Positions 29,021-60,700 of a DNA stretch of 64,000 nucleotides are shown in pieces. Location of the stretch: NCBI GenBank assembly GCA_000708835.1, contig DF237223.1, positions 1 to 64,000 on the forward strand. The letters run 5' to 3'. The position numbers were made by a program, and so were the translations under genes. The stretch comes from Klebsormidium nitens. Taxonomy: Eukaryota; Plantae; Klebsormidiophyceae. Below the pieces are notes generated by a model. That model was not told where the DNA came from. It was given only the letters and a program-made list of their open reading frames with translations, and made no database searches. Within the stretch, counting starts at the first letter, position 1; each line of letters begins with the position of its first letter.

Positions 29021-32000
29021 TTATCGAGGCAGACTCCCCTGCTCTACAAGAGACGCGTCGGCAAAGAATCCTATTGCTAATGCTGTGACGTTGTCCTGGG
29101 CTTTGGCCATCCTCGCCCGCATCACTAGCGTCTCAGCAGCCTGCTGCGCGGTGCTCGCGGCGTCGACAGCGTCCGGTGCCCTTTGACGGGCTGCTCTAAC
29201 CTGCACGAGAAACCCTGTTTTGGTAAGAGACTCATATACGGTTGCTGAACGTGTCCGACAAAATTGCGGCCTTTCCCAAGCCTCGGGCTTATATGCTCGG
29301 GGCCAGCACCAAGAGTTTGGGCCGGAACAGCGACCTAAGCTTTGCAGATATGATGTAGTCTGATGATGCGACCAGTCCAAATGGTCCGAATGAAGTGGGC
29401 ATCAGGACCGTGCTCACAAAACTGGGCTCCTCCGAGAACATGAATGGCAAGAAGACCCGAGTCGCACAAACGAGGGGCGGCTCGGGCGGTGCGGCTTACC
29501 TCCGCTATCAGCTGCAGGGCGCGCTTGCCGCTCATAACGTCCCACAGTCCGTCGCTGTACAGACAACAGGCGATTGCATCACGCACAGTGTTCTCGACTG
29601 TAAGCTTCCCCACAACCCTCTTCCTCTCTCTACTTATCAAATCTACTGCAGCCGGTGCGCTCGAAACTCTGACGTCAAGAACGGCAGCGCGATCCCCAAA
29701 CCCGTCACCGATTGCGGCCCCCGGAACTTTCTGCCAATAGCCATTGAAATAGCGAGTCTATGTTGGAAGCCAAGCATCAGAAGTGAAGCAGAGTCCTGGG
29801 GAACGACTTTGAAGGCTTTAGTACGAAAACGTACCTGGCCATGACGAGGCTGGCCCGCGTGTCGGGCGTCACGTGATGCACCCTGCTGACGTGGGGGTGC
29901 GCAGAGAGGCCCACGTTCTGGCCCTTGAGGAACTTGTCGCCCAGCGCGCGCGCGATGTTCATGCCTGCACCGGCGACCAGGTAGGCGGCCGTTGTCAGAG
30001 ATTCTATCCCAGAGCAGAGGAGCAGCGATACAGGCCTTTTCTTTGGTTTCAGCAAACAGCATTAACTTTCTCTAGGCTTACAACCTGAAGCGGCAAGAAA
30101 CGCGTGGGATGATTACTGCTCACTGGATTTAAAAGGTCTTCCCTCATCTCTGACAGAAGCTGCGACGCAAGCGAATTGATTCAGAAACAAGCTTTCGGAG
30201 CGACGCGCTCCAAGCCTTCAATAACCATCAGCCTTTTGCCACAGTCCAAACTTCGGGCAGAGACAGAGTCTTTGACGCCCCTCTCACCGCATAACCTGGT
30301 GTCCCCTTCCCCGAGCTTGAAGCCCGCATCCGACAGTCGGTTCCTCTCCATGGGGTTAACTACTCGGTGATCTTCAGTCAGCTGGAGCACCTTATCCCGA
30401 ACACTGGAACAATGCAGCAGAGCAGAGCCTCAGCAAATAACAAAGGCAACGGTGGTCTGCTCATTTTCCAAGGAGATATCCAAACCGTTTACCAACGCAA
30501 GAGCGTCCTGGCAGAACTATTCTAGCGCAAAGCAGTTCTTGTACCGCAAGACCCTCTCTCAATGAGCCGATGCTGCGAAGCGTTGCTTAGGCGTGCCCGA
30601 AAGCGATCGCCCGTGTATGTATGGAACGGCCAACGAGGTGGCCATTCTGTTTAACGTGGAACCGTGTCTCGTCGGAGGCCCGAGCAACACCTTACCTGAG
30701 GAAGCAATGCGAGTCGCCTACATTTGCGCACTGTACAAAGAAAGTCGCGGAATCCTGGCCCTTCCAAGCGAGGAGCACAGTAGCCGTGCATCCCTGGACC
30801 GCAACGAGAGACTGGTCAGCCGGAAGGCCGCTCGAGTACCTCCTCATGGCTGAGCAGAACTCGCTTTTCCAAGAAACATTACGTTGGATTCTATGCGTGA
30901 ACTAGAGCGTATGATGCTCCGCCGCCCAGACAAGCTTCTTTCAGGGCATGCTACATTCATGATGCCGCCGAGGCAGGTGGGAAAATCCCATTTGGCTTCG
31001 GCAAAGTCTTCGAAAAACGTTTTGTTATCAGTATCCCAAGCCCAAGCTACTTGGCGAAGAGCCGGATGTCCACACAATCAAGCAATCAATATAGATGGAA
31101 GGCCGATTTGAGGCCGTAAATGAGAGTTTCAAAACCGAACATTTAAGACCGTGTTTTGCTGCCGGTCGCAACAGTCCGCTTTTGAGAGCTAAAAAGGCTC
31201 ATATCTGGTCTTTTTAAGGATTCTTATTAGCTTGTGAATTGCCCCTTCTTGTGAGCTCGGATTCATGTCTGATTCTGAGCCATTTTTGATACACACTGGT
31301 ATCTTCATTCCTAACAACGAAGAAGAACACGGTTCCTTGCAGGCGTTCTTGGCTTGCGGCAATTCACCTCGTCCTCCATGGTGAGCTCCGCCTCCGTGGC
31401 TGCGAACGCTTCCCGCAGGACGCCGGCCGCATCGCCCCCTTCCACCACCGCCTGCCGAGCGGACGGCTCCGAGAGCAGCCGCGAGAGGTGCGACGGAAGC
31501 AGCCTGCAATCATCGTCCGGTTCGGATCAGTCTGAAGTCGAATGCTGTCTGAAAAGAGGCCCCGTTTATCATGCAATATCCAGAGTTATTTCGACCGATT
31601 ACCAGCGTACTTTCTGTTTTGGAAGGCGGACCAAGTCGAATTTATTGCCATGGACGTAAGAGTCTTTTTCACCTACACCAAGGAGATGTGGTGGTCTATA
31701 GAGATCTCCAAGGAGAAAGAAACAAAACCTGACAGATATAACCTCTGACGAGCTCCATTCAGCATAGCCTCCCTCAGCGAGACTGTCAGACGAGCAGAGG
31801 CGACTTACTTGCTCGCAGCGTCTGCCGCCCCTCGCCCACAGTGCCCATCAAATATGCAGAAGACGCCCACCTGCACAGAAGGACGGAGCTGCGCTTGAGG
31901 AGAGAGACAACAAACCTGTTCTAGCTCTACCGTCCTCCTCGATTGAATTGCTAACAGCCTACGCCCGTCTGTTCGAACCTGCCGGTCGAACCTGCGCACT

Positions 32001-34051
32001 TCACAAGCCTCGCTTGACAACTTCTCTCAGGACGTGGCAGTGCAGCCAGCAGCAAAACGAACCCAAGGCTCACGTCATCCGCCCCGGACAATGGCCACTG
32101 CCACAGCGGTACATCCTCCATCGGGAGCGGTTTTCCCCTCCGGGCCGCCATGGGATCCGATGCGACCCCCACCGAAAACGGCCCCCCCTCTCCCAACGTG
32201 CGCCCACTGGAGCTCGGCGCCTCAGCTAGGCTGACCTCCGCCGTACTGCTGGACCCGAAGGTGATGACGTCACCGTCCGAGAGTGCCACAGGGCCGCTGC
32301 GCCTGCGGACGCCGGTTCCGGACAACCCCACTGGGGCGCGGTTCACAAAGGTGCCGTTCAGGCTGCCCTCGTCGACCAGGTGCCAGCGCCCGGACTGGGG
32401 AAGCCAGGAGAGAGAAGAAAATGAAAAGACGGAGTTGCATGACTTCGTAGGCAACAGGGGAAGAAGCATCAGGTCTGCAAAGCAGCTCATGGACACAGTA
32501 GACTGATCTGATTTGGCCCATGGAACATCGACTCTATCTTCAAAGGTGTCCCTGCAGCTCTACTTCGAAGACAACCTGCTGAAAGAGTATGCGGCGTTCA
32601 CAATCAATCGGCGCCCAATTCAGTGTATCTTTTTTGTCCCTCTAGCCAACCCCAAAACTTACTACAGAGCCAGAATTATGCAGACAGCAGCAAGACCAAA
32701 CCGCTCCTCTTTTACCTGTCTATTCCAAGCCATTGTTGCATGGCGGCCCGACACTTCAGGATCATTGACCACCAAGTCATTCTCTGGGATTCGACCCACA
32801 CTGTATGGCTTCGCAGCCGTTCGAACTGCAGGCCATGTGACTTTTGAGCCTGAGGAAGGTCCCGACATGACTTGGACGTTGCACACAGAGCCTGCACGGA
32901 ATGGATTTAGTGAGTCAGGTTGCTGCAGATTGCTCGTTTCAAAAGGAGGGATCCCACAGCTCAAAGTATCACATTGGTCCTGCGGTTGAAGAAATGTTAC
33001 GGGGGTAGCTGAAGGAGACAAGGATAGCTCGTGCATTGTGTGCACACTCGCTCGTCGTTGTTTGATGTTTTCTGGCTCACCGTCGGTGTAAAAGGACCCG
33101 TCTTGTCTGGTCTCCCCTTCAGGTCTGTCCTCCGGACTCGCACCATCTTCCGGCTTGCGACGCGGAACCCTTTCTGCCGTCTTTGAGTAATCAAAAGGCG
33201 TATCACTGGAAAACCTGACTCGTTTTCGCTCAACTGAGCTGATCTCATTGGGCGGTTCTGTAGGTTGGGGCCCGTCAGCCTCCCCCTGATCACCATGCTC
33301 GTCCAGAGGCCAACTATTGTTTACAGATTCCAGCGTGCCAGTAGCGGGGCGTGTTTCTTCTAGAACATCGCTGATGGCAGACATAGAGGGAGTCCCTTCC
33401 TTGCTGCCAGAACTGACCTCGCTCTGAATCTTTGACTCTACTTTGGACGCAACTGACTCTTGCATTGGTGACGTCTCAGACGAGATCCTATCAACCTGCG
33501 CATCATTGAAGTGATCTGATCAGTACAAGCCTGCAAATTATGCATATCAGGACTAGGGGCTCTCAGACTTTCATGATGGAAAGGTGCTGACATCTGGCCA
33601 ATGCAAACACCGGCAGCCTCATTGTCCATCAGCTTTGGGATGCAAGCAGCGGCCTTTATGTCCATTGGAGGCAGGTTTACAATCTGTAGGATCAACCTCA
33701 GGCAATTTCGGGGCCTCGCTTGATCCCCAGCTCAAAAACTTGATTGAAAAGTGCCCCTTTTCAAAACCACTGTCCCCAGTGGTTTATTTAGATAATCTGA
33801 TGACCGGAGGGGATGCCAAGACAGCTGAAAGATCCACTAGAGGTGGCCTTGCTGCGTTACATGACATGAAATTGGCCTTGATTCATTGTTGTCAAAGGAC
33901 TGCTCCCTCCAAGGGAAATGCTTACCTCCTCTACACTCAGGATCGGCTGCGCAGCTTCTTCCATCCTCTTTCGTCTCCGACTCAATTGCAGGATCCCGTA
34001 AGCTACAACAACGAAAAGTCCAAATGAAAGCACATTGTATGCCATTCTCAT
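29021..34051 (-). CDS. KAPP: Kinase-associated protein phosphatase (N-terminal signal anchor, FHA domain, PP2C domain)
   Basis: N-terminal transmembrane segment VLSFGLFVVVAYGILQLSRRRK. FHA motifs VGRIPENDLVVNDPEVSGRHATMAWN and WHLVDEGSLNGTFVN. The KAPP-like segment PFSVGVASDPMAARRGKPLPMEDVPLWQWPL. PP2C motifs FCIFDGHCG, LTEDHR, NIARALGDKFLK, DGLWDV and AQDNVT. Confidence 0.92.
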
Positions 34052-42217: not shown

Positions 42218-43037
42218 TAAATCATGGAATTAAGGCAGATGCTCAAGAACGATCATACTCAAAGAAGAACAACTTCAGGCGTTTAACACATTAAGTTAGT
42301 CTTGACTTAGAGTTGCCGAGTATCGCATGGACGACTCTAGAATGCGGGGGTTTGAGGCACCGATGCGTGCCATTGTGCATTGGCCAAACAAGATGTATCT
42401 TGCAAGTCGAGTCGAATTGGCTAGTGCCCAAATTTGCAGGTTGCATGCACTTGATCGACTCATGTACCAAAGATGACATGGTAGGTATGCAACATGTGAT
42501 AGACCAGTTGTGAGTTTACTTCCTATGTTGTTATGATAAAGGTCCAATAGAACGAAGAGGATTGTAGTGACAGGTTAAACGACCCGCATGGGAGATAAGG
42601 CCTTTTGTGAGCGCGGATCATACGTAATGAACGTCTGCATGCATTGAAGGCACTCTCTCAGCTCACCGCATGGGGCAATGGCGCAGCTGCTAGCGAACTT
42701 TACATACACTCAAGCACCTGGTGTTCTTTTTCGAGTCGACTTATTAAGTCCAAGAGCAAACCTTCAGCTGACGGCAAGGGGCTTTGAACATCGGGCTTGA
42801 GGCGAATAGTAGGAGCACTTGTTGGTCGGCCAGGTGCTTGCACTAATGGAACCACCATAGCCGAGGACAATGTTACGTGTCGAACGATGTAATAAACACC
42901 GAGGGTTCAAACCTGACTGTACGTAGATAGAGACTCATAAGCACATGGCGAGGCAACTCAAATAACAGCTGGCTGCAGTCTGTTTCAGGGACTGGTACTA
43001 CTGTGGAAGGCTCCTCTGTCAGAAATCTTCCAGCAAA

Positions 43038-46000
43038 TCATATCATTCCAAACTCGGCGATCCCTTGCCCGACGCCCTGCAACCTCTGCGCTAGGTGGGC
43101 ACAGTACGGCTCGTCTTGAGATGCCGAGTTCAACACCACTACTAGATCCATCATATCCCTGTTGAAGGCCGTCTCCGCTTCTTGAATCTTTGCTTCGATG
43201 CCTGAGTCCTCTGCAGCCTGCAACGCGTGTTGAATGGCAAGCTCTCGCCGCAGCTTGTGTTGCTCGCGGAAGTCTGCGTATGCGCCTCCAGAAGACGCGC
43301 TCTGTAGGCGAAGGCAGAGCGTGATTGTTCAGAGAGCTGAGCAAAGCTAGACAGATGGCAAGGTGCAGCACGTTGAAAATCTGCATAATATTGCGGGACC
43401 CTCGAGGGACGAGAGTGTATGCCTCTCAAGTTCGACTGACGGTCAACCTCCAAGATTACAATGAAGCTGCTCTTAGAAGAAGCTGCTCTGTGTTGCAGCT
43501 CAGTGTTATTAGACTGAGCGCCCGTATCCGAACCTAACGTCTTCGGCACTGTACGAGCACACCCGATAAAGATCGCTGCTGCCGTAAACATTGCTCCCTC
43601 ACATTGACGGACGGTCTGCGGGAGGGCGGCCCTGAGGCGCTGCCCCGCTCCGCCTCGTCGTCGTCGTCTGGAAGCGACACCGCCGGAACAAGGTTCTGGG
43701 TGACCATACAGTAAAAGATGCAGGCCCTCTTCACCTTCTCCACACGCTGCACCGACATGGGACGACACCACGTTAAGAGGCGAAAGATTGGAAAGAGGAC
43801 CCGCTCGGTGGCTGGTCAGGAGGATCGAGTCCGGGAAAGCGGCGGGTTGTGTAAGTGCACGAGTACGCAGTCTGAAGACCCCAGAAGAGAAGGAAGGCAA
43901 CTCGCCCTTGCTTTGCTCAGAATGAAGGCAGTGTCCGTTCCCCGCACTTAGTGTCAGAGAGTTCTGGTTGCCTGATGCAAACACGAACAATGGTCTACCC
44001 AGGAAGGCTTAGCTTGCCTTGAGGATCTGGGGCCAGAAGAGCATGCATTCCTTCAGCGAGGAGTCCTGAAACTCGTCGTGGAGCGCAATGACCTGCAGAC
44101 ACCGGCCCAAGATGCAATCAGTTTCAGAAACGAATGCGAAAATCCCATCCCTTGCCAGCACCTGACGAGAATCGAACCGTAACGCACCCCAGCACACAAA
44201 TACGAGTGCGGTAAATACATCGGCAACGGTTGTACGACCGCTTACAACGAAAAGCTTATGCTTAGTGCTTCGGACGGCCTCAAGGAAAGCAAAAACTTCT
44301 TTCTGGGAAAGGGAGAAATCTGGAACCTTCGAAGGTGGCCTAGAAGCTGAGCCTCACCTCGTCAACGGTCTTGGCCGTGGCAACCTTTGACTCGAAAGTG
44401 GCCCACTTCGGTTCCAGGACCTGGACAAAAAAGGAGGGTTCCCTTCGATGGGTCACGAAGCGGACTCAAGCGGCGGTTGAAATCCTAAACGTGAATTGTA
44501 ATCTTAGTGTAGGGACGTTCATGTGAGACCGCTTGAGCAAAGTGGATCATCAAAATCAAGGCCCCAAGCAAAGCTCAAGAAGATGAAGTCCACTGCGCTC
44601 CACCCCTCGGGCTTCACTCTGAGAGCCCGGCAGAAGATTCGATTGTGGCGTACCTCGAAGGTCATGTAGTGCTGATAGGTCTGAATGAAGTGCAGCATCC
44701 GTTGGCAGAGGAAGTACGACGGCTGCATCAGGGTGAAGCCCATCAAGCCCCGCATGGTCTGCACAAGTGCACGCAAAGATCAGTTGGAGCTTCAACATTG
44801 TGCAACAGAAAGACTCCGCAAAGGAGGGCTCCACGTTGAATTTGGAGCCAGCTCCGACATTTACGTCTGCTGAAAACAGGACGCCTAAAGTGGGCTGCGA
44901 ACTTTCGTGACAGAGGGAAGGCATTGGAGTGGGACAGGCATCGGAAGAAGCTCTCCCTACGAAGCAAATCGAGCAATTTGTGACCACCTTGACAAGCCCC
45001 GACACTGTGCCGCTGACTTTATTGATAAAAGAGCTGTTTAACTTGCGTACAATGAATGCGCACACCTGATGGACCTGCCACGTCTGGCACAGCTGCCGCT
45101 CGACGTGCTTGCAGTGGAAGAGGTGCCGGAAGATGAACTGGTACTTGGTCAGAGCGCGCCGGGAGATGACCAGCGTCAGGGGCCACCGGACCTGCACAGC
45201 ACGGGGCCTCTGACTTGTTCTTGGATGGCTCAGAAAATATCGTTTGAAACATTGAGAAACATAAAAGCCTCCCCTTGCAACGGGAATCTCCGCTTGCACG
45301 AACGAGAGTGGTTGATCGTGAGTATGCCGCATGGCACTCCCCCTGCGCCAAAGTGGGCTGACTCGGTAACAAAGCGTGCATCCCGTCCCCCTTTTACCTT
45401 GTAGTCGAGGGTGAATGTGTCCAGCCCGCTTATGTTGATGGGAGCCCCTTCGGAAGGCCCGGGTTCAGCGAGGGATGTGAAGTCAAGGACGGGCCGCCCG
45501 TCGGGTCCGGACCTCAGAGAGCTGTGCAACTGCGATATGAGTTGCTGGCGCTCCTGCACAAAGGAAACCAGGATTTGATAAACGCAAAGGGAGTCGGTCA
45601 AATTGATGGCCACGGAAGTACGTGCTGGGATCGCGAACGCGCAGGTCGGGAAGTCAATCTTTCTTGTCCCACCAGTTCAGGGTAACTCCGTTCAAGAGAA
45701 AACACTCCAGGTCGAAGCGGGGTGACTCCGTCACTGTCTAACGTGCTCCTTGAACTACCGAGAGAATGAGAAGGAGGACGTTCTTATGCAATGGGCTGAT
45801 CGCGCATGGGCTTTGGCAGCGTCGCCTCACCACGTCGCAGGTGAGGTCCTCGTGGAAGGGGTCGGCGGAGCAGACGGAGGTGCGCAGCGCCAGCTCCAGC
45901 AGCGACTGCAGCTTCTCCACCGAGATCTGGGCGGGGCGCAGCCGCAGCTCGTCGCGCGCAATGTCCATGAAGTGGACCAGGAAGTCCCCCTGAACGACAC

Positions 46001-49000
46001 GCGCTGGTTGTCAGACTAGCGCTGACCAATTGTTGGGCGGTGGTAAAAAATCTGTTACAAGTCATCGATGAGAGGGTCGATAAGAGGAGACGAAGGCCGC
46101 CCATAAGCTAAGACACGTCTGTTCTCATGAATCCTCAATGCATAAGGAACGAGGACGGAATCGTAATACATCCTTAGAGAGGTCTCACTTGATCGAGGAG
46201 AAAGTAGTGCTTCATTGATCGCAGCCGCCCCATCAGGTTCTCCTGCGAGGAAAAGAGATACGTCATGAAGTTGGAAAGATCTTTCATGTTGCAGGCACTT
46301 TGGTTCTTTCGCTCTTGGAAAGCAAGACGAAGGTACGTACGACAACGACCAGACTGCAAAAATTGCGGACCTCAGTAAGTCATTCCATGAGGCAGAAAAG
46401 AATGCCAGAATCCTCACCTTCTGCAAGAGCACATCCAGCAGCTGCTGGCTTGCGCGCATGTGCGCCAGGTTGATCCGCTCCAGGAAGACTCTGTCCGCTA
46501 GTGCGTGCAGCCGCGTATCTTCGCCAGCATCCGGACCCTGCGTGCATCAGTCAACCTTCGTTAATCAGCACCGAATGTTACGAAGTGTCCGTCCAGCACC
46601 ACGTTTCGGAACGTTCCAGCCGAGAAAACGCGGAGCTTAGCAACCGCAATCCCTCATTCGTGCAGATTTCAAGCTGTGCTACGATGCCAGCGCTTCTCGG
46701 AGGAACGCCCACCTTGATCTGCTCTCCGCACTCCCGGATGGCGTTCAGATACTTCCCGGTGGTGCGGATGGTCTCGGCCGTGGCTGCCAGGAAGGCGGGG
46801 ATCTCGCTGCGCAGCACGTAGTGCTCCCGCCAAAAGCCCGCGCGGTAGTCGTCTCGGAGGCCCTCCTTCTTGAAATCTTTCTTCTCCTGGATCAGGAACT
46901 CCTCATACGGATCGTCGATCTCGCCACCATACACCCACCTGCAAACGACGAAAGTCACAGTTCGAGCCATCAGAGACGTCTTCTGCTGACATGCCTACCC
47001 GCCTTTGAGCAGAGTAAAGGTGACGGTCTCAAAGGATCAGTAATACTGTTTGGTAGTAAGATTCACGACACCTTCCGCGTCTGATATGGGCTCGATGTTT
47101 GTGGAAGTTAGGTACTTTCCGTACCTCTCCAGAATGCGGAAGTACGGGGCGCGAGCATCTTGCACCAGCTTCTGCAGGAGGGCTCGAGCCGCTTTGTCCC
47201 CAGCCAGTGCGGAAGCCTGGACATATAGAGAGGAACCCTTCATCAGCGGGTGTCGACTGATCTAGCCAAAGCCAGATACCTGGGGCATCAGCAGGTATGC
47301 AATCGACCTACTGCTGGCAACATTTGCCACAACGACAGCGATGGATGCATGAGAAGATTGACTTCCGCATAGAAGCAGTTCGAGACTCAAGTCGTATGAT
47401 ACAAATCGACGCACCTTGTTCTGGAGCAGGTTCAGAAGGCCAGCTCCATACAGACGGTCTTCCAATGCTGTCTTCACAACGGAAGCCAGCATGCCCAACG
47501 CATCCATCATTGGCTGTGACAAGCGGAGAGAAAATCAAAACATTGGTTTAGCGAGGGCGTTCTTTGAGGGCCGTCATAAAGGTAAGGGATGTCCATGCTA
47601 CACATCTCTGAAACGGGGCTTATCGCTCCTTATGAAGAACAAGCACTCTGATTGTAGCTTGCAGAGCTGAGTAGAGAAGATTCGTCGGCAGAACAGTCGC
47701 ACCCAAGGCTGCTGTACCAGCAAAGAACTGACCAGGTTCTCGACACAGGCCCTGCAATGAGGACTTGTTGAGCTAGCGCCAACATTTCACCTGGCTGTAG
47801 AACAGCAGGCCCTGCATGGAGAGCTTCCCCAGGCGGAACTGGTGCTCGAGCTGCGCCACCATGATCAGGTAGTCCTGCAGCAGGCCTCTCAGCGCGGCTG
47901 CCAGCGCATGGCTGACCAGGCCATGCTTGTAGTGCCATCGGACCTCCACAAAGTGGGCGATCAGGTGGTAGCTCTCGCAAAGGGGCAGGATGCGCTTAGC
48001 CAACTCCTGCAGAGTCCAGGACTTGCAGAAATGATGTGGATGTTGAAAATCTTACCCTGACTGGCCAAGCGATTGCCTGTGTTTGAGGACAGGTAAACAA
48101 GCAAGTCGTAAATATTTTGCCAAGTCAAGATGGGATGATGGACCATAGGTAGATCGTTTGCAAAAGCGGGCAATTTATGCACTTTGAACAAAGAGAAGGT
48201 CCGTAGTCCCTCACCCGCAGCGAGAGATCCATGCTCTCATCAAGGTTGAAGACCACCTCTCCCAACTTGCCTGCTTTGGGCCTGGCCTGCACATATTCCC
48301 CGTCAGCTCCGCCCATCGCATACAGCAAGTCATCTATCAGAAGCAGCTCCTGAACTGCTGATGAGTACTTGCCAACTCCGGACTTCCCTGTCCCTAAGAC
48401 TGATCGCTTTCCTTCCTGCGCTGTTCTGGAACCGCTGCTTGACGCCTCCAGAAAGTCTCCAGTCAGATAGGGACGCTGCTCATCCCAGGCTACACTTGCA
48501 GGGTAGGTAACACCAGGAATCAGTCTTCCAAAGTGGTCATCCGCTGGTGGCTGCCTTGCCTGGCCAACCGTCTGTTGCAGATCTCTCTGGTCTTTCCTTG
48601 CTGCTATCGAACCAGCATCTGAGGGCGTCGACCCTCCCGGGGCTTTGGTTGGAGCAGCCGCAGTGCTGGTCTGCCCGGTAATCCCTCGTGCATTTGGCTT
48701 CCCCGGGCCACGTGCGGCAGCCCTCAACAGTTCTACTTTTGAGAGCTCTGCCGCAAGCTGCGCGCGACTCCGGTTCTCTGCAGCAATGGAGGTGGGGGAG
48801 GTGACACGCGGTGTGGTGTCAGGCGTGGGGGGTGGAGTTGTGGCCAGTGAGCCTTGTGATGCATTCCTGATCGCACTGTCTTCATTGTCTGCGGAAGGTC
48901 TACCTACGGAAGAGCTGTCATTGGCTGTGCCATTGGTTGTGCTGGTGGTGAACCTGCTTGCTGATGGAAGGGAGGGCATCAAAGCAGCCAGCCTGTCAGC

Positions 49001-49021
49001 AGACGCTGGCAGCTTCTCCAT
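43038..49021 (-). CDS. GCP2: Gamma-tubulin complex component 2 (Spc97/GCP2; multi-exon; additional upstream exons possible)
   Basis: [12 protein letters not shown]; [21 protein letters not shown]; [11 protein letters not shown]; [27 protein letters not shown]; [16 protein letters not shown]; [16 protein letters not shown]...[13 protein letters not shown]; [21 protein letters not shown]; C-terminal [14 protein letters not shown], which resembles the plant GCP2 end. Confidence 0.95.
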
Positions 49022-50121
49022 TGGACTTCAATCTGCAAACAAGGTGGTGCAAGAAGCTTGAGTACTATTGCGTAGAACAAACCTCATGAGCTTTCTGGGT
49101 GTGCCTTGGACATCAAGTGCTGTACACTATCATGTGAGTGCTCTGTAGGATGAAGGACTATGTGGGGCTTTTAGCGGTGCAAAGTCCCAGAAAACATTAG
49201 ACTGAAGTTGATAGCCAAATCAGGCCTGTGGACAATTGTTCCGCCAGAAGTAGTGGTGGCTGAATAGTCCCGTGAGATCTTGGTTAGCATTGCGGTGGTC
49301 CAGACCATCTGATGTTCTAACAAGCTCCACTTTTAATACTTTCTCATGGTTGCACGAGTCACAACGTTGAATATTGCAAGATTATGAACTCTGATAAGGG
49401 GTATATCCCTTCAAAGATCCATAAGCCTAAAGTTATAGCCGACTGAACGCCTTTCCTCGCAAGAAGACGGGGCTCCAAAAGATCCCCGACACGCCTCCAC
49501 AATCGCGATACGCTTCGCTTGAAGTAGGATCTCCTTGTTTATGAGGCACTCAGACGTTTTTGTAAGGATTAACCAGATTAAACATGATACTGCGGGGGGC
49601 TCAAACCAGGCATGGATGGTGAAATCATTGAGAGAAAGCAACAAAAGATATTCTGAATGTGAGCTCATGGAAACCGCACCTGATTCACAGGTTGAGTAGG
49701 CCTTGCATTAGAAGAGATCAGCAGCGAGCTATTGCTATCAGAATGGCAAAGTGACGTGCATCGTTGCTGATCAATGCCTTGACGACGAACTCCTTAGCTG
49801 ACGCTTTGAGACGCTTTGAACCAGAATCTTCGACAAGCTTCAACCGCACTGGAAGTTTACCAGTAATGGACAAGCTCTGGCCTTCAAGCTTTTAAGATTT
49901 CATCCAAGCTACTGTGCAACCTCCTCCACGCCATTTCCTCTAAACCCCTGGGATATCCATCGCTTCACATCGCTTCAGTCTGTCCTCACCACCTGGTCCT
50001 ATGCATTTGAAGCTTGCGGAGGCGACAAGCAATCCCTGATGCCCTTGCACCTAGTACCTAGCTTGCATTCCTTGCATTCCTTGCCCACTTCGTCCTGACT
50101 TCTTGCCAATTTGCAAGTGTG

Positions 50122-50278
50122 GCAGATATTGCAGATTACTTTAATTGCAGATTACCGGTATTGCAGATTATTGGCCCGGCCGGACATGCAGTGTCACTGC
50201 GCATTTTGAGTGATGGGCGCGGGAATTGGCGAGGGGGTTAGGGTTTGGGCCTTTGAGGCTGTTAGGGTTTTAGGGTTT
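50122..50278. promoter_or_regulatory. Candidate cis-element cluster in the divergent GCP2 / GCR1_C-gene interval
   Basis: Three copies of TTGCAGATTA at about 50130-50171. Three telo-box motifs TAGGGTTT at 50239, 50263 and 50271, the first abutting a site II TGGGCC at 50246-50251. Confidence 0.45.
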
Positions 50279-51728
50279 CAGCTTTCAACTGTTCAACCAG
50301 TACGGTTCGAGCCGTCTCGCCTAGTCTCGCCTCCTCTAGTTCTGCCCTTGGTGACATCATGCAAGCGTACCGAACGGACAAGAGTGTCGACCAAGTTAAA
50401 CACAATACAGCTGTCCGCCAGTGTCATTGGCGTCCGTTGTTCCGCAGCCAGGAGGGCAGGCGCCACTGTAGTCTGTAGCCCAGGTCCAGGACCTTGATGG
50501 GGTCGCCAGCTGGATCAGCTCACCTTTCTTGTTCAGCTGCCAGGCGATTAAGGCAGTTTTAGCTGTCCAAGCCACTGCTATCTGGCCCAGCTGCTGCGTT
50601 CGAGCATGCATCTTTCCTTGACCCAGGCTTCTAGATAGACTCGTCCTCATGTTTTCCTAACATGTAGAAGGCCTTTTGTAGCGCTCGAGTCCTTTCAAGG
50701 GGCAGGCCTGAGTCCTGCCAAGAATGTGTTACAAGAAAGACATTGAAGTGTAAGTGCACTTGCAGCAATAAGGCGCCCAGAAGAGGTGCAGAGTAGCTGA
50801 AGGCATTCTGCTCTGACAGGAAGCAGCTGTTAGCCCCCGTCTGAGGAGTTGCAAAGTTAAGTAGATACCCAGCGGATGGACTCTGGTGGTTGACCATGCA
50901 GCTTGTTCTGGATCTCCGGTGTTGAGCGTCAGAGTGGGACATGCCTCGCGAATCGTTTGGGCATGGGACCAGTGATCGGCTGCTAAAACCAGTTTGGTTG
51001 CCTTTTGAAGTTTTGTGGTTCTCTTGGCTATCCAATTTTGCCAGGCCACCTTTTGATGTTGGAAGAACTGAAAACCTTACAGTCACAAGTTGCCCAGGCT
51101 TCTCTTCCTGCTTGTGGTTCAACTGAGCAATGTGCAATTTACCAGGCCCCCACTGATAGACTAGCAAACTTGGGCAAGCCTGACTTAGGATGCCAGTTTC
51201 TCACACCAGATTTTGAGCAAGTTTCAAAAGGTTGGGTATTGCAGTATTTGGCCAAGTCCTGTACGGCAGTATTCTGACCAAGTCCTTCCCCTCTCCTTCC
51301 TCAGCATCCCAGACCGCTTCTACGGTTTCGGTTTTCCCCCAGCTTCATTGAGACACTTCAGTGGCCACACGCAACCTCAGGGCACATCTGGAGTCATCAG
51401 AGCCCATTTTGGGACGCCTCTGTTCAGGTGCGCTCAGTTGAAAATAGTCACCGGCTCCAAGGTCCTTCCAGTCCAATGTTTGGCACACCAGTAGCGGCAG
51501 TTGCTTGCCGTGCCTGGGTGGAAAATAAGGGGGAAAGCCTGCCCCGTGCGCTTATGCAAGTCATTTTTCGTTCATATGCACTGTCCCGCTTGACGCCCCT
51601 TTCACATTGTCCCACTTCATGCCCCTTTCAATCGTGTGCATGTGTCAGTTGCTGGTCTTTAACGCAGTCTTCTGACAAGTCCTGGAAACATACAAGTTAT
51701 TAACTACTCCCTACAGGAAGGAGAGCCC

Positions 51729-53861
51729 ATGGATACTCCGACGGTGCATCTCGAGCACCCCCCCCCTCCTGCGCTCTGCGAGACCCCCCCCCAGCAGCGC
51801 CTGCCTCCCTTTGCCCACGAGCAGCCAGAGACACCCCCGAATCAGTTCCCAGTCCTCACGTCCCCCCCCCAAAGCAATGCACTTCTTTCCCAGACCCCAA
51901 CACTTACCCCTCAAAGCCAGGAAACCCCCACCCATAGCCAAGCTGCCCTCTCCCCAGAATATGCAAACCTGCCTCAGGCGCGTGCGATCCTCCCAGCGCC
52001 GACATTAGCGGAGCAGAGCCCTTCAGTACAAAGTGCGGGCGAGTCGCAGGTTAACATCGTCAATGGGGTAAGACATCACTCTGCCTGCGAATATGTAGGT
52101 GGAGTGGCGGTGTGTCTGCGCTTGTGTTACTGCAGAAGGCTCGTTTGAGTTCAAGGTTGCCCTTCAAGTGGGGGCTAAAAGCGGCTCTCTTTAGGGGGGG
52201 CCAGACAGCTGCAATGCCCCCATCCATTGACGCCTGGGTTCCGGGACTGGTTTTTGTTGCTTCAATTGCACATCCATGTGGATCGCAAGATGTCGAGATG
52301 ACAAGCTGGTCAAGTTTCACCTGGTGTTTTTGTTTTTCTTGCATCTGAACTGCAAAGATAGCATTCTCGAATCTGCATAAGCCCACTTGCTCCGATTTCG
52401 TGCACTTTTCCTGTCCGCCTTCTCACAATCCAAGCAGCTTCGCTCTCGGTTATCAAGCCTCAAGACACTTAGGAAACACTTCACCGCGCGGGTCTCACCA
52501 GGTGATTAAAAATACACGTTCCGCTGACATGCGCCCTTTTCCCCGCCAGGTGGACATCCTGCGCGAGATTCAGCGGCTGGCGTCCCGCGTGGACAGCGTC
52601 ATGAACGAGGTGTCCCAGGTGAAGCAAGTCCAGTACACGCTAGAGTCGCTCATCCGCAGCTCCGCCGCTTCCCCTGGGCGCAAAACCCCCAAGACCACCC
52701 CCAAGAAACGACAGCGGAAAAAGGCCCCCCCAAAAGAGCCCCAGGCGCAGGCCCCCCCAGCCCCTCCCGTAGTTGCTCCCCCACCCCCCGAGCCGCCTGC
52801 CGAGGCAGAGGAATCGGAGGGGCTGTATGACTGGCCTCCCGTGAAGACGGTGGAGGAGTGCTGGCGCGAGATGTACGAGGGGCTCGACGGGCGGCCCTCG
52901 CTGATGCAGCTCGAGGAGCAGCACGCCAGCGGGTGGCGCCGGAAGAAGGGCCAGCGGCAGCGCTTCTGCGAGAAGAAGCAGGTGGGGAAGGGCGCAATTG
53001 ACGCGCATGGTGGATGATCTGATTGTCTCTCGTTAACCCATTCTTACATGATGAACCTCGTTTTACCAATATTGCTTTGACGTTGATTGCTTTAATTCTT
53101 GTCAGGTGTTTGCTCGTTCGATTCCAGTTGGATCAGACACGCTGAAGTCGTCTTCAACTGTTACTTAAGTAGAGCAATATGCACTTGCATATCGTCAACA
53201 TTTACCCCCCAGAATCAGCTGGCTTTGAGTTTATGCCAAGCTCAAGTTGATGTAACTCCGGCAGGTCTGCGAGTACGTGAAGCACCTGGCGATCGAGAAC
53301 CGGTGCTCGCACCAGGCGGCCATCCAGCACCTGGCCAACAAGAAGGAGAGCTTGTGCAAGCTGCTGCTGCGGCTGCGGCAGTACAAGAAGTCGGCCAGGG
53401 AGATGGAGGCGCAACAGGCGGCCAACACGATCCGGAGCGGGGGGGCTGGCGGCCCACAGCATATGCAGGGGATGCAGGGCGGGTTCCAAAACGGTATGGT
53501 CATGGCTATGCAGCCAGGCATGCAGCTTGGCGGGCAGAGCGGAATGGACAGCGGAATGCAGCCTGCCATGCCGGCCGGAATGCAACCGGGCATGCAGGCG
53601 GGCATGATGCAGCCAGGAATGCAGGACGGAATGCAACCGGGGATGCACCCTGGGATGCAACCCGGGATGCAGACTGGGATGCAGATGGTTATGGAGCCGG
53701 TGATGCAGCCCGGAGTGCAGAACGGAGTGCAGAACGGAGCAGTGCAGTCTGGGTTGCCGTCGGGGATGGAAGGAGAAATGCACGACGGGATGTCAACGGA
53801 GATGCAGTCGGGGAGGCAGAACGGTACACCGAGTGCCCTCCAAGAACCTGCGCAGGGATAA
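51729..53861 (+). CDS. GCR1_C-domain putative transcription factor with MQPG-repeat C-terminus (exons 51729-52049, 52550-52981, 53265-53861; upstream exon likely)
   Basis: Phase-0 GT-AG introns. The protein has a P/Q-rich N-terminus, a short coiled coil and a basic NLS-like stretch PKKRQRKK. It then reads LYDWPPVKTVEECWREMYEGLDGRPSLMQLEEQHASGWRRKKGQRQRFCEKKQ|VCEYVKHLA, fitting the GCR1_C consensus (TV..lWrEw..Gl.g.Ps+..Le..g..WR). Confidence 0.82.
53463..53822 (+). repeat. Coding period-12-nt repeat (Met-Gln-Pro-Gly-like tetrapeptides)
   Basis: MQGMQGG...MQPGMQLG...MQPAMPAGMQPGMQAGMMQPGMQDGMQPGMHPGMQPGMQTG...VQNGVQNG; roughly 25-30 degenerate units. Confidence 0.9.
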
Positions 53862-54350
53862 AGCACCAAATTCGGCAAGGGAAGGGGTGTACTCGTTTTA
53901 GATACAGGGTGGATCTGCTGACCGCCCACAGGCGTCAAACTTGGGCCAAAACAATGGTCAACTTGCACGAGTCAGTTCAGAAGTTGGCGTCACCGTGTAT
54001 GAGTTAGGACTGCTCATTGACTTGGAATGTAACTCGCATCTTATATTGTTGCGGTTAGATGCGTGTCTTGTTTCGTAAGCTCATCATCCGGAACTTAGCC
54101 TTCTTCCAAAAGTTTTCAGCGGATGAAGTGGCTATGGCAACATAGCTAGGGCGTGCATCATTTAACGGTGATGCATTCATTTCATTGATCACTCAGTGCT
54201 TGCATTTGATTTGCACGGTTCATAAATTCGGCATGCATGAGTCACGCACATGCACGTTGTGCAGGCCCCCTGAGACGGCCTTGATTATACAGCCATGCAT
54301 GCTTCGCCATAATGATACCGGATTGTGCCGGCATGATCACATTTTTGTAC

Positions 54351-54394
54351 AGTGAAGACCCAGCTTTTGCATAGTGAAGACCCAGCTTTTGCAT
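54351..54394. repeat. Perfect 22-bp tandem duplication
   Basis: AGTGAAGACCCAGCTTTTGCAT twice, head to tail. Confidence 0.85.
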
Positions 54395-54710
54395 GCTGTG
54401 GTATGATCCCCTCTCATGGTTTGCATGAAACGATTAACACCAAAAATGCAGAACTCTGCATAGATTGACAATGCATGATGGGCATATACCTGCCACCATG
54501 CGGGACTCTTGAGACGTACACAAGAAAAGTCATTGTCAGGACCACCTTGTGTCATCTCAAGTTCTATTCTGGGGCGGATGTCATTGGTATATGTCATTGG
54601 ACTGTAGTATATGTCTAGGCCTCGATGAATTGACACGACAACCGCAATCATGACTAGCGCTCTTTGAATTACAAGCAAAGTTGCAAGCAACAAACAAAAC
54701 AAGCCCTCTA

Positions 54711-57700
54711 TCAGTCGACGTCCGCATCGAAAGATCTCGTGAAAGATACTCTCGGCTCAGCTGCCTCTTCTAGCGGAGTGCCGGATAGCATGCCAACATT
54801 CTGCTCAAGAGCACGGAGAAGTGCCGCCTCAAGCCAGATCTGCTTCTCAAGAGACCGTCGCTGTTGGCGCTCGAGACGAGACTGAAGCGCCGTAAACTCC
54901 TGTGGAAACCAGATTAAGATGACATTGGGAGGCTGGACCTTACGTACTACTTAATTCTAAACGAGGAAAGAAAAAGAAGTTTTCTGAATGAAATGGGGGG
55001 CGCTAGTCCAGAAGGTAAAAGCAAGAAGTAGAGAGACACATCCTTCGCCTATGCGATCTTAGAACGGATCCCTCAACTTTCGCTGCAAGCACTAAGGACA
55101 AGTTGCATTAGCAGTGGCACAGCCTTCGAGGTTACTCTATTTCAAGATGCCCGACAAATGTCTCGTTCACAAGATGTAAAACGGAGAGAATTGGGTTTGA
55201 TAAGCTCACACTGGTCACACGTTCGATCCAGTCGAATCCGACCAAGAAGTGCTGTCCGCGAGAACTTGCTGGTGAAACGTGGATTGGGCCGTCGAGAAGA
55301 GAAGACGGAGTTTGTAGCTGGTCGCAAGAGCTGCGCAGAAAGGCGAACCAACCAACTTAGACGGTTGTGGTAAAGAGGGATGCGGTGTTCGATAACCAAT
55401 TAGATCTGATCCCATGGTTTTGGGAAAAGGTTGCTCCCGATCAAGTCGCCACACGAGAATCTCCACAGATGTAGTCAATAGCAGGGTTGCTTGCGAACGA
55501 TGTCAACAGGCCTTAAAAAAGGAACGAAGTGCCAGAAAACTACATCTGAGAAGTATGAGAGGAGAGGTTGACCTTCATCGCCTACGTACCTGCTTCGGAG
55601 GGCTGCAAATTCTCGGAGCTTTGACAGAGAAGCAGACTCTTGCTGCTCTCCACCTCCGTGCAAGCTGCCCTTGTCCGAAGGCGAGCGCGTTTCTGTTCTG
55701 CCGAACCCGAACAAGAGCTGCCTGCCCGACAGACGCCGCTGCGCTTCTTCTCGGATGGAAAACCCTTGCGCGGGGCTTGACGCTGCCGACCCGGAGGGCG
55801 AGCCCCGGTGAGCTCCGCTCAGTCTAGCGCGTGCCCGCCCGAGCGCCCGGTTTGCGACGACCCCTTTGGCTCCTTTTGCCCCAGACTGCGACAAGCGACG
55901 CTGAATCTCTACAAGGGCCGAGTCGAGCGCCGCCTGGCACTCTATCAGGGAGTCTCCTCCCGACTGGTCTGAGAACGTCGGTCCGTCAGGGGAAGGGAAA
56001 GCAAAGTGACTGGTCGGCGAAGCATCGTAGTCGTCGCCTAAGAGGCATGCAGGGCCCAGCTGATGCGGCAACCCTGCTGTGGCTGCCGAACTGAGACCCC
56101 GGTTGAATCTCTCGTCCCCTAGGTCGATCGTGCTGCCAAAACCGAGCGGTTCTGAAGGCTGCCACTGCGGCCGCGCGCGCTCTGACGGCCGCAGCGGGGA
56201 TAGCGAGATGATGGGCGAGCCGGGGTGTCCGTCAGAGAACGCAGATGGTGAGGAAAGCACTGCTGTTTGGTCAGGTTCTCTCTCCGTTACCGCACATTCT
56301 GGGGCTGGATCATCCGAAGCGGGAGGGTTGTTGAAGAACGGCTCGGGAGGCTTCTCGTACGACTCTCCGGCGGGTGTTCCTGCCGGGAAACTGGGAGACC
56401 TCTCCTCTTCCAAGGCCGCCGCTAAACGGTTAATGTCGTCCATCTTGTGCTCCTGATCCTGCGAGGACCAAGAAGATTCACAATAAGGAGGACAGACAAC
56501 AGTAAACTTTCTCGTAATGCGTGAAAGATCAGACGAGAGGACCACTTCTCTTCGACGACCTCTGATCCATCCACAGGAGCATCACATGCTTGGAAGCAAA
56601 TTTAGCTTGGCTGGAGAGACAGCTTGGTCAAACCCCAGAAAAAGGCACTTTGAGTGATGCAGATTATCTACAAAAAGCTACTGAAGTTTCATGCATCAGT
56701 CTCAGAGAATGGTTCGCGTACCTCCAAAAGCTTTTTTAGCGCAAAGAAGTCCGCAGCTTTCACAGTGACAAAGTCCGCCTCCGCGCCCTTTTCCTGATCG
56801 CTCGGGTGGTCATTCAACACGCGGAACGTGATTGGCTCAAGCTGGGGAGAATTCAAACGGGCCTCTCCTCTCCTCCCCAGCTCGAGACGCTCTCGGCTGA
56901 GCTCTTGGATCGTTTCCTCGCGTTTCGCCAGCTCCGCCCGCGTCTCTTCGAGCCGCCTGACCGTTGCGCTTAGCTCCTGCTTGATCTCCTTTGCTGCGTC
57001 TCTCCTTGCTCGTGCGAAGTCCCGCTCGCGCGCGTCCCAGCGCATCTTCATCTCCCTGACGATCCCCAGCAGAACGGCGTTCTTCTTCTGCTCCGCCTGC
57101 ACGTCCAGGGTGCGGCCCGAAAGCTCGTCTTTAACCTTCTGCATCTGCGACCGTAGGGACTCTACCAAGCCCTCCAGGCCTTGCCTTGCGCGATTCCCCT
57201 CTGCTGGCTCCCCCTCCCCGCTGTGCTCTCGGTTTAGTCCACCGGCTGTCTCACCGGCAGAGCGTCTCAGGTCTACGGTTGGATCCTCTCTCATGGCTTC
57301 TGGACGTTTCCCTGCGGTCTCTTGCCTTTCCAGGCCGCCGCTGAGAATTGTCTGGAGCTGGCGGAGCTCGCTTTCAATGTGCGCTTCCCTTTCCCTGCGA
57401 AAGAAGCACGCAAGCAGCTGGTTTGCAAGGCCTTTCTAGAAGCAGGAACCCGATCAGGTACTTACAATAACGACAGGTGACTGGATACAGAATGCAACAG
57501 ATCCTTGAGTCAGACCCGAAGAAGAAGAAACTTTGTTGGAAACAAATCAAACGACTTGTCTCAGAAGATATCGAGCTCAAGTATTCCAGAACGACGTTTC
57601 CGGAATAAACAAACCTGAAATTAAGCTTAAGAGGAACTTGAATGAAAGTGTCTATACCTGAAGATGCTGTTCATCTGCTCCATCTCCTCCTCGTGCCATC

Positions 57701-60700
57701 CTTCTGCCTCCTGGAACCGCAGCCTCGCGTCCTCGAGCGCCAGCTCCAGCTCTTCCTTATCTCTTTGCAGAATGCTGCGCTGCAGGGCGAACTCTGCCGC
57801 TTTCTCCCGCAGGGCGGTCGGCCACTTCTGAAGCTCATCTTTCAGGCCCGCCAATTCTGTTTCGTAGATTTGAAGCTCCGTTCTCAACCTGACAGTATAA
57901 GAATGTATTGGAGCTGAGCAACCGGGCACCCTGCGGATTGCACTAATGCACGTTTTTCAGAGTAAACAGACCGGGAGCTGCTCTGCCGTTTCGATCACCG
58001 ATCCGAAATCTTTCTCTTGTCGTAAAGATAGACAAATCTGGTTCTCGGACTTGTTGAGATTGATTTTCATGGTTGGAAGGCTATCGACTCATCAAAAGCG
58101 TTGAATACAAAAAAACAGGTTTAGCTCCTTCGTATGTTCTTTCGGTCTGCCCACAGCTCTTTTGATCGGTGGACTCCCGTTTCATCTGTCTCCCACCTTT
58201 CACAGATCATGCTTACCTCGCCTCGTAAAGTTGGTGCTCTTCGATCCGAGCGTCCTTCAGAGTCAATTCTGCGTCCGTCTGGCTGGCCTTGGTCCTCAGC
58301 TCTTCAACGAGCCTCTCGAGGTTTTCAATCTGAGTGCGGAAGAAAGACTCATTTCAATGCCGAACAGAGCCGATAAAGCAGTCCTATAAAAATGGAGATG
58401 AACTTCATTGGCAGCCTTCTGGACCTACTGGGGCACATGCAGATCTACTGAGCAAGATCTGCAGATAGAAGTATCGGACACCTTACGCTTTGGCGGACTC
58501 TTTACAAAGCTTCGTTGAACGATATCCTGGTGTTAGGGTCCCGTCCAATCGCTGTTTCCATCTTTTGCCAAAAGAAGCTATTGGCATCGAAAGGCTAGCA
58601 CAGAAGATTGCCTCAATTCTCACCTTGAGAGGATCCGGCGGCTGCTCCTGCTCACCGACCACCGGTACTTTCTCTTCAGTTGCAGCCTTCTGCGTAAAGC
58701 CGGATCTCCAGTCTTCCGCAGCGAGGCTCTCGTTTCGCTGCAGCTTTTCTGAGAGAATGTCCACTTGACCCTCTTTTTCAAACAGCTTCAGCTGCATCTC
58801 CTCGACTTCCACCTTCTGAGCAGCTGCTTCTCGGTCACGCTCCGCCTTCATCTCTTCCACCTGCCGGCGAGAATGACTCAGCTCTATCTGCACAGCCTTC
58901 AAGTCCTCCTGCAGCCGCGTCACCACAGTTACAAGGCTTTCCTTTTCCCTCTTTACAAGGTCGTTCGTCGTTTCCTGTCGTTTCAATCTCTCGCTGAGCT
59001 CTACGATCTGCTTCAGCTCCGCCTCCCGCGCTGCTTGACGTCTTGAGAGCTCAGACTCCAGTCTGGAGCACTGATTCTCCAGCTTGTTGACCTCTGCCAA
59101 AGCATTGCTTCCCTGTTCTACAGCCGCCTCCTTCGTTCGTTTCCATCTCTCGAGCTCCTCCATCAGAGCGTGCAACGCATCTGCTTCCTGTCTCCCGTGC
59201 TCGGGGCTTGCATTGTTGTCGCCCGCCGGCAGCTTCTTGAACTGTTTCATGATGCCTGATAAGTCTGTCTCGCGCTCAATGACAAGCTTTTGGGCGCTCT
59301 CTAGCATTCTCTTGAGCTCAGCAATGCGCTCCTTCTGATCCCTTGCCTCTCGTTCGAGACTGCCACCGGTCTCCGCGCAAACTTCTTTTTTAGCTGCTTC
59401 TAAAGTCACTTTGGCGGAATCATGGTCACCTTCTAAGCGCTCCAAAGCGGCAGACAGATTTGCCCGTTCTTCCTGTTCCATTCCAAGCTGAAGCTCAACC
59501 ATCTGCAACTGTGCTTCTAATTCCTCAATCCTGATTTGAGAAGCCCTCTTGGTCACTTCCGCTGCATCTTCGGCTTTCCGATGCTTCTCTTTCAAATTTC
59601 TCAGCGCTTTCTCCATCTCTTTCGACTGCGTAGAGACACAAGATTTGCATGTCAGAGAATGCTTGGACTGGAAGCCGGCTTTTCCAGTTCGACAAATGGC
59701 AAGCCGGATGTCAACAACTCTGCTTCGAAGGATGGAACACAGGGAAACTATGTTGACAGCATGAACGCATTCCATTCCCATCCGATGTGCAATATTTTCC
59801 ACTACAGAAGTTTTCCACTACTTTCTGGCAGTTAGGTATGGATCAGCCGCAAATGAGAGCGGCTAGATTTTGGAGATTTTGAGCCTGATTGGTCTGACCT
59901 TAGCAGCCACTGCCATCTCCCTCGCTCTCCGCATCTCCTCCTCTCCTTCTCGCATCTCCACCATCACGCCGCGAATGACTTCGTCCATCTCCTCCTGTTT
60001 TGCGGCCAACACGCGATCCAGTTCCTTCCGCATGCTCTGCTTCTCATGCTCTGCTCGCCGGCGATCCTCCTTCGATGCTCGCAATCCCTGCCGGAGGGCG
60101 TCCACTTCGAACTTTAAGGCCCTCAGATGCTCTGGGTCTGTGCTGGTCTCCTGCAAATCAAACACGTCACTTCAGCTATCTTCGAGCAGGCAGCAGGTCC
60201 TTACAATGTTGCATTCCTTCTACGTTTCCTCGTTGAGGCGCGAATGCTACAGAGTCAAATAAGCTTTGCAGATTGGAATTAAGCAGATCCAAGAGAGATT
60301 TCCAAGATCTAACAACAGATTGGAATTAAGCATACAAGATCCAAGAGAGATTTTCGATCTCACGTATTTTTCTTTGGTCTTTGGGATCTTACCTCTTGCA
60401 GGCGCCGCTCCGACGCTGTCTTCTGACCGCTTAGAGGTTGGTCGAACTTCCGCCCGCTCTTGAGGTTCCGGTTGTGCTTCTCGTGAAGGGGACTCCTCAA
60501 ATCCTCACTTGCTGAAGAGTATCTATGCTGCGTTTCGGAAGAATCGACGCCGAAGCTCTCCAGAGAGCCCAAGCTGGCGGTTGACAGACGTCCTTCACCT
60601 TCTCTACCAATTTGTCTTTCGAACTGAGATGTTGCTTTCACAGAAGATACGCTTCCTCCGGTAAGAACCGGTTGCTCAAATACACCAATTTCTGGAGCAC

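Follow-up and report, generated by a model that had tools for sequence, protein, structure and literature searches.

We analyzed a 64,000-nucleotide stretch of the Klebsormidium nitens genome (contig DF237223.1, positions 1 to 64,000; hereafter the window), which carries at positions 51729–53861 of its plus strand a three-exon gene for a protein with a GCR1_C domain. The gene is probably a domesticated host gene, its GCR1_C domain derived from a CryptonF element and inherited vertically, and its product would be a nuclear DNA-binding regulator of transcription. The original prediction had described three exons encoding a coiled coil, a stretch resembling a nuclear localization signal (NLS) and a GCR1_C motif, and the exon borders, the translation, a helix in the AlphaFold model and a match to the Pfam profile PF12550 confirm this layout. 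It had further proposed that the gene arose from a domesticated transposon domain or from a transfer; a host gene it is, and an origin in a Crypton is likely in view of two recombinase-linked relatives (P0027 and P0067, described below), while transfer from a fungus finds no specific support.

A host gene at a fixed chromosomal position

The gene is a single-copy host gene, as counted in the 64-kb window, which contains one copy, and it lies at a fixed chromosomal position and is under purifying selection. It begins with an ATG at 51729 and ends with a TAA at 53859–53861, and its exons of 113, 144 and 198 codons (the last followed by the stop) together encode 455 amino acids (coordinates in Table 1). 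The splice contexts are gtaaga after exon 1, ccgccag before exon 2, gtgggg after exon 2 and cggcag before exon 3. The GC content of intron 1 is 0.51 compared with 0.62–0.67 in the exons, and this intron cannot be aligned to the distant locus L001, whereas the adjoining exon 2 aligns.

All sequence searches were run exon by exon. Close homologues were collected by a word-index search with exon 2 and by an exhaustive HMMER scan of 1.84 billion representative proteins with a three-species profile, and they form four close clusters (P0001–P0004) with the contigs L002, L001 and L004/L005; the contigs L006–L008 carry P0106, a cluster-mate of P0002 at 90% identity. The orthologue contigs come from independent Logan and JGI assemblies. 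L002 shares the whole region with the window, with 72–92% DNA identity over window positions 42.8–62.6 kb including the introns, 90% protein identity in exon 2 and 80.5% in exon 1. L004, with 70% protein identity in exon 2, shares the downstream genes, as does L005, and L001, at 54% (tblastn) to 63% (alignment) protein identity in exon 2, aligns in exon blocks only, with a gamma-tubulin-complex (GCP) gene upstream and the downstream genes in common. The gene occupies the same position in L002, L004 and L001, so the syntenic orthologues by which the original prediction could be checked do exist, and the GT and AG sites of both introns fall at the same codons in all three.

The ratio of nonsynonymous to synonymous substitution (dN/dS), calculated by the Nei-Gojobori method for each exon segment, is 0.07–0.27 for every segment. 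Compared with L002 it is 0.17 for exon 1, 0.14 for exon 2, 0.07 for the domain part of exon 3 and 0.21 for the tail, and compared with L001 it is 0.17–0.27; the first half of the GCR1_C domain has values of 0.17–0.25 and the second half 0.07–0.18. The earlier observation that the gene shows no nonsense decay extends to the orthologues, as none of the three exons is interrupted by a stop in the window, L002 or L004, nor are exons 2 and 3 in L001. A low-complexity first exon that starts with ATG and runs up to a GT donor can also be made out in L004 and L001, the candidate in L001 having been read by eye. No full-length product of the gene was found in either protein collection searched (word-index search; 1.84 billion representatives), which illustrates how such genes can be missed, and the matches in the two collections included no transcript-derived product.

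The absence of a recombinase frame and of terminal repeats, also noted beforehand, was borne out. In the 64 kb no recombinase frame was found by tblastn when all retrieved proteins, among them those with a recombinase, served as queries, and a recombinase profile run with filters off over 3282 stop-to-stop frames gave a best match in the window with an E of 0.43 (at 390–872). No terminal direct or inverted repeats were detected within 48000–58000, and no conserved extra exons were found between the flanking genes. The syntenic position, the splice sites, the dN/dS values and the lack of a recombinase thus identify a host gene; an active Crypton is contradicted by the fixed position, the one copy in the window and the missing recombinase and terminal repeats. 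Fungal contamination, another way in which the prediction might have failed, is not borne out either: for ~20 kb the window contig is colinear with intron-rich host genes that other, independent assemblies contain. When JGI metagenome contigs were scanned with an alignment of five species, 79 pattern sites matched, 0 of them confirmed.

The GCR1_C domain and its relatives

The Pfam GCR1_C profile (PF12550) matches exon 2 with 42.3 bits (E 9e-11), above the gathering cut-off of 23, and the last 55 residues of exon 2 by themselves reach 44.9 bits; the match spans profile positions 7–52 of 80. The motif quoted in the original prediction, KTVEECWREMYEGLDGRPSLMQLEEQHASGWRR, corresponds to exon 2 residues 99–131, and these scores together with the position of the motif establish that the family assignment is real and far above chance.

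Pfam alone reports no match for the short remainder of the domain in exon 3, the second half being recognized by alignment to P0027, a homologue in which the domain is uninterrupted. The exon 2 match ends at residue 92 of P0027 (residues 39–92, 50% identity, E 3e-16) and the exon 3 N-terminus aligns to residues 93–131 (BLASTP, E 2e-4), and the two exons therefore abut exactly. In an hhalign comparison of the four-species exon 3 N-terminus with 75 GCR1_C domains the alignment starts at column 56 (local E 8e-4), exon 2 covering the 55 columns directly before it, and the global alignment places exon 3 at columns 56–106. Over its first 48 residues, exon 3 is 83–98% identical among the orthologues. 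The position of intron 2 is identical in L002, L004 and L001, while the intron is absent from the putative Crypton-type gene that contains P0027 (contig L003), where the domain is one exon. A motif common to the gene and P0027, W-R-R-x-K-G-Q-R-Q-R-F-x-E-K-x-Q-x-C-x-Y-V, spans the position of the intron in the window.

The proportion of G or C at third codon positions (GC3) is 0.96 in the exon 2 part of the domain (52817–52981) and 1.00 in the exon 3 part (53265–53408); neighbouring long open reading frames have 0.50–0.76 and the orthologous domains 0.83–0.98, so that the domain in the algal gene and its orthologues (0.83–1.00) differs from that of P0027, with 0.49. The synonymous divergence (dS) from L002 is 0.09–0.14 in the domain compared with 0.34–0.53 elsewhere in the gene. 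The GC3 bias and the low dS of the domain point to strong codon selection or to another synonymous constraint.

The only close kin retrieved in the scan of 1.84 billion proteins were the orthologues and P0027, and the earlier suggestion of an overlooked algal transcription-factor family is overstated, as the exhaustive scan returned one narrow orthologue group only; comparison of a 144-residue profile with 1.8 billion proteins sets a high E-value bar, at which distant members could be missed. Per-domain scores are 133–139 bits for the orthologues, 57 for P0027, 40–51 for fungal sequences and 38–48 for yeast-type sequences. P0005–P0026 and P0048 matched the exon 2 profile in three to seven stretches and rank high because the scores of tandem domains add up; the 8 of these proteins that were scanned with Pfam have from 3 to 7 GCR1_C domains in tandem and lack a recombinase, an architecture unlike that of Cryptons and of the yeast genes alike. 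These proteins were dropped as close kin, their per-domain scores not being close. Further relatives include yeast-type proteins, a Pezizomycotina-like multi-copy group with one protein from Fusarium oxysporum, and proteins combining NDC10_II with GCR1_C, which is the CryptonF architecture.

In a maximum-likelihood tree of 71 domains over 55 columns, which is weakly resolved, the four orthologues and P0027 form a clade (99/83), followed by P0067, which is recombinase-linked, as the next branch out (95/78), whereas the yeast-type (P0039, P0052, P0059, P0078 and others) and Pezizomycotina groups lie elsewhere. The phylogeny that the original prediction had envisaged thus yields a grouping, with the reservation that 55 columns and long branches underlie it. 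The P0027 gene lies at 1–3993 of L003, a 30-kb contig (JGI 3300060285) whose start truncates it. Preceding P0027 on its strand are matches to the recombinase profile at 170–397 (profile 91–132, 13.0 bits) and at 695–877 (profile 153–188, 16.4 bits), the latter with the H-x-x-R motif as H-I-G-R, and these two significant matches are the top two among the 3282 frames searched. A weak match follows at 2353–2772 (profile 285–328), where tblastn also aligns positions 2452–2631 with P0046 and P0047, at the C-terminal end of their Pfam NDC10_II region (E 4e-4). From the colinear order of these matches P0027 can reasonably be read as the final exon of a CryptonF-type recombinase gene with many introns. 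As P0027 and P0067 are both recombinase-linked and are the nearest in the tree, they support domestication from a Crypton, and the GCR1_C domain was most likely derived from such an element whose recombinase has since been lost.

CryptonF elements encode a recombinase together with GCR1_C, and yeast GCR1_C genes have been concluded to derive from them (Kojima and Jurka 2011, PMC3212892); in the green alga Chlamydomonas reinhardtii the GCR1_C-bearing element CryptonF-1_cRei is active (PMC9977147). The yeast genes Gcr1, Hot1, Msn1 and Cdg1 resemble the algal gene in having kept a CryptonF-derived GCR1_C domain without a working recombinase, and they too are vertically inherited host genes, for DNA-binding regulators (PMC3212892). 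The algal case nevertheless appears to be an independent event, in an alga of the green lineage, as the tree positions are far apart. Nor is the gene an orthologue of Gcr1, Hot1 or Msn1, as the yeast-type sequences form a distant clade of their own and score 38–48 bits against 133–139 for the orthologues. It differs from the yeast genes further in its combination of a coiled coil, an NLS-like stretch, one intron-split GCR1_C domain and a Gly/Met/Gln/Pro repeat tail, and in having no remnant of a recombinase, of which Gcr1 and Cbf2 retain a degenerate one. With the green-algal CryptonF element (CryptonF-1_cRei, PMC9977147) and the L003 gene it has the GCR1_C family in common, the L003 domain (P0027) being its closest non-orthologous relative; it is unlike CryptonF in having neither tyrosine recombinase (64-kb window) nor terminal repeats (48000–58000) and in being present as one copy there, and unlike both CryptonF and the L003 gene in its fixed syntenic position and extra intradomain intron. 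Ndc10/Cbf2, the centromere-binding CBF3 subunit of budding yeast, is likewise a GCR1_C-bearing, Crypton-derived and DNA-binding protein and has the recombinase-like NDC10_II fold, which the algal protein lacks.

In the literature searched we found no domestication of a Crypton GCR1_C domain in the green lineage and no stand-alone algal GCR1_C host gene, and within those limits this would be the first Crypton-derived GCR1_C host gene of the green lineage, yeast cases being already known. It offers a clean, testable case, the gene being small and fixed in position, with a candidate type of donor and with orthologues of three degrees of divergence, and a system in which to ask whether a captured transposon domain still recognizes its parent element. 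Its practical value is modest, as a candidate lineage-specific DNA-binding protein for studies of regulation in streptophyte algae.

Candidate function and competing explanations

AlphaFold predicts a helix at exon 2 residues 2–39 (pLDDT 81–90) with hydrophobic residues at positions 3/4, 7, 10, 14, 17, 21, 24, 27, 31 and 34/35, the 3–4 spacing of a coiled coil, and this helix, which is highly conserved in three-species and four-species alignments, likely serves dimerization. The basic stretch RKTPKTTPKKRQRKKAPPK has the core PKKRQRKK and lies in a region predicted to be disordered; in an alignment of three species the core P-K-K-x-Q-x-K-K is invariant (columns P51, K52, K53, Q55, K57 and K58) and resembles a nuclear localization signal. 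The C-terminal tail contains the repeat family D1 at 53496–53816, with a 12-nt unit that encodes roughly G-M-Q-P, and consists of 22% G, 18% M, 17% Q and 10% P; its length varies between species from 100 to 322 residues, L001 being expanded to ~320, and its composition is kept.

These parts are arranged in the order disordered N-terminus, coiled coil, NLS-like stretch, Pro-rich linker, intron-split GCR1_C domain and Gly/Met/Gln/Pro tail. In the course of events that we favour, a tyrosine-recombinase element of CryptonF type from the algal lineage would have supplied the GCR1_C domain, its recombinase part being lost; the resulting gene would then have stayed at one place on the chromosome, passed on vertically and under purifying selection. 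The protein would most likely enter the nucleus by means of its basic stretch, dimerize via the coiled coil and bind a specific DNA motif with GCR1_C, its low-complexity tail acting on transcription. In yeast Gcr1, Hot1 and Msn1, GCR1_C binds specific DNA, and the layout of the parts together with this analogy suggests that the product is likely a nuclear regulator that binds DNA as a dimer and has a low-complexity effector region. We infer its role as a transcription factor from these features.

Several points weigh against this reading of the gene. The three-exon gene model is a prediction based on conservation alone. The tree branches of P0027 (1.16) and P0067 (1.75) are long, which makes long-branch attraction possible, and in L003 each recombinase match is short and, taken singly, weak (16.4 and 13.0 bits; tblastn E 4e-4), Pfam's NDC10_II model not reporting these matches. 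As judged from sequence, only the DNA-binding domain is traceable to Cryptons, because the coiled coil has no significant Crypton match: in comparison with the inter-domain helix of Crypton proteins its best score was 5.7 bits against 2.8 for reversed controls, which is not significant, its hhalign score against the Crypton helix was equalled by 3 of 100 and 19 of 200 shuffles, and it was unmatched in L003. A likeness, seen by eye, of the coiled coil to the helix that separates the recombinase from GCR1_C in fungal Crypton proteins was accordingly set aside on the strength of these controls. Finally, DNA binding by GCR1_C in this protein is predicted from family annotation alone, with no solved relative. 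The domain model of P0027 is all-helical, with pLDDT >90 over most of residues 41–146, but a search of the PDB by sequence, Foldseek against the PDB and VIA-align wide found no informative fold for it, the best Z in VIA-align wide (5.4) belonging to a designed protein.

The main rival to the host-regulator interpretation is a factor for the control of transposons, which would bind the recombinase sites of CryptonF elements, at their ends or targets, and compete there or recruit silencing, with no ordinary regulation of host genes. That the nearest relatives are Crypton-encoded domains, and that only the DNA-binding module has been kept, would fit such a role; we consider it unlikely since the domain is strongly diverged (at best 50% identity, to P0027), which argues against a common site specificity, and conservation at 54–63% protein identity suggests a stable cellular role. 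Equally tentative is the broader proposal that a streptophyte-type alga reused the DNA-binding module of its own Cryptons in a conserved, strongly codon-biased host protein, either for policing these Cryptons via their recombination sites or as a lineage-specific regulator with an oxidation-sensitive, Met-rich tail.

Horizontal transfer of a recombinase-free GCR1_C gene from a fungus or oomycete could explain why most database relatives look fungal (the multi-GCR1_C and yeast-type proteins and the one from Fusarium oxysporum) and why the atlas look-alikes belong to Mucoromycota and Oomycota. It is an improbable source, as the best fungal per-domain score is ~50 bits against 133–139 for the orthologues, the gene's closest neighbours in the tree are linked to recombinases, not free-standing fungal genes, the phase-0 introns, one of them intradomain, are host-like, the GC3 bias is common to all orthologues, and algal CryptonF elements (PMC9977147) provide a local source.

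It is very improbable that the protein binds DNA for chromosome segregation, in the manner of yeast Ndc10/Cbf2, and is not a transcription factor. In streptophytes one would not expect point centromeres defined by sequence. Ndc10/Cbf2 is a precedent for a Crypton-derived GCR1_C protein in this role (PMC3212892), and the gene adjoins a gamma-tubulin-complex gene and an open reading frame with a weak, below-cut-off Nuf2-like match; Ndc10, however, retains the recombinase-like NDC10_II domain that is missing here, and gene neighbourhood is poorly informative on function in eukaryotes. That the gene is a decaying transposon fragment or part of a contaminant contig, without function, is scarcely credible, since the transposon-typical domain family and the lack of an annotated full-length product or transcript in the protein collections searched are outweighed by the open frames (in L001, of exons 2 and 3), conserved splice sites, dN/dS of 0.07–0.27 and colinearity with host genes in independent assemblies, which contradict it.

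Coordinates and neighbouring features

Table 1. Parts of the GCR1_C gene and their positions in the window
Feature	Position	Strand	Basis
Exon 1: Pro/Gln/Thr-rich N-terminus, probably disordered, 113 codons	51729..52067	+	ATG, GT donor
Intron 1, 482 nt, phase 0, GT..AG	52068..52549	+	Sequence reading
Exon 2	52550..52981	+	
Coiled-coil-type helix, exon 2 residues 1–39 (predicted)	52550..52666	+	AlphaFold, hydrophobic spacing
Basic NLS-like stretch, exon 2 residues 44–62, then Pro-rich linker	52679..52735	+	Translation
GCR1_C first half, exon 2 residues 92–144	52823..52981	+	Pfam PF12550, P0027 alignment
Intron 2, 283 nt, phase 0, GT..AG, inside the GCR1_C domain	52982..53264	+	Sequence reading
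Exon 3	53265..53861	+	
GCR1_C second half, exon 3 residues 1–48	53265..53408	+	BLASTP to P0027, hhalign
Low-complexity Gly/Met/Gln/Pro tail, 12-nt (GMQP-like) period, to stop codon	53409..53861	+	Repeat family D1

A search with Rfam gave no match in the 64-kb window. The gamma-tubulin-complex gene upstream of the GCR1_C gene is a many-exon gene at ~43000–49021 on the minus strand with a Pfam GCP_C_terminal match at 44556–45332; L001 conserves ~14 of its exon blocks, and GCP_N and GCP_C both have matches in the orthologous loci. Downstream, ~480 nt past the stop codon of the GCR1_C gene, a 22-nt unit, TTTTGTACAGTGAAGACCCAGC, is tandemly duplicated at 54343–54386 with copies 91% identical. A 104-nt block at 54799–54902 is 78–82% conserved in L001, L002 and L004 with variation mostly at third positions, and looks like a coding exon, on the minus strand, that belongs to the downstream gene and lies outside the GCR1_C gene. 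Elsewhere in the window, exon-sized frames at 14506–16682 and 31951–33465, both on the minus strand, have matches to Pfam Chromate_transp (59 and 50 bits) and to FHA domains, and by these matches are assigned to other multi-exon host genes.

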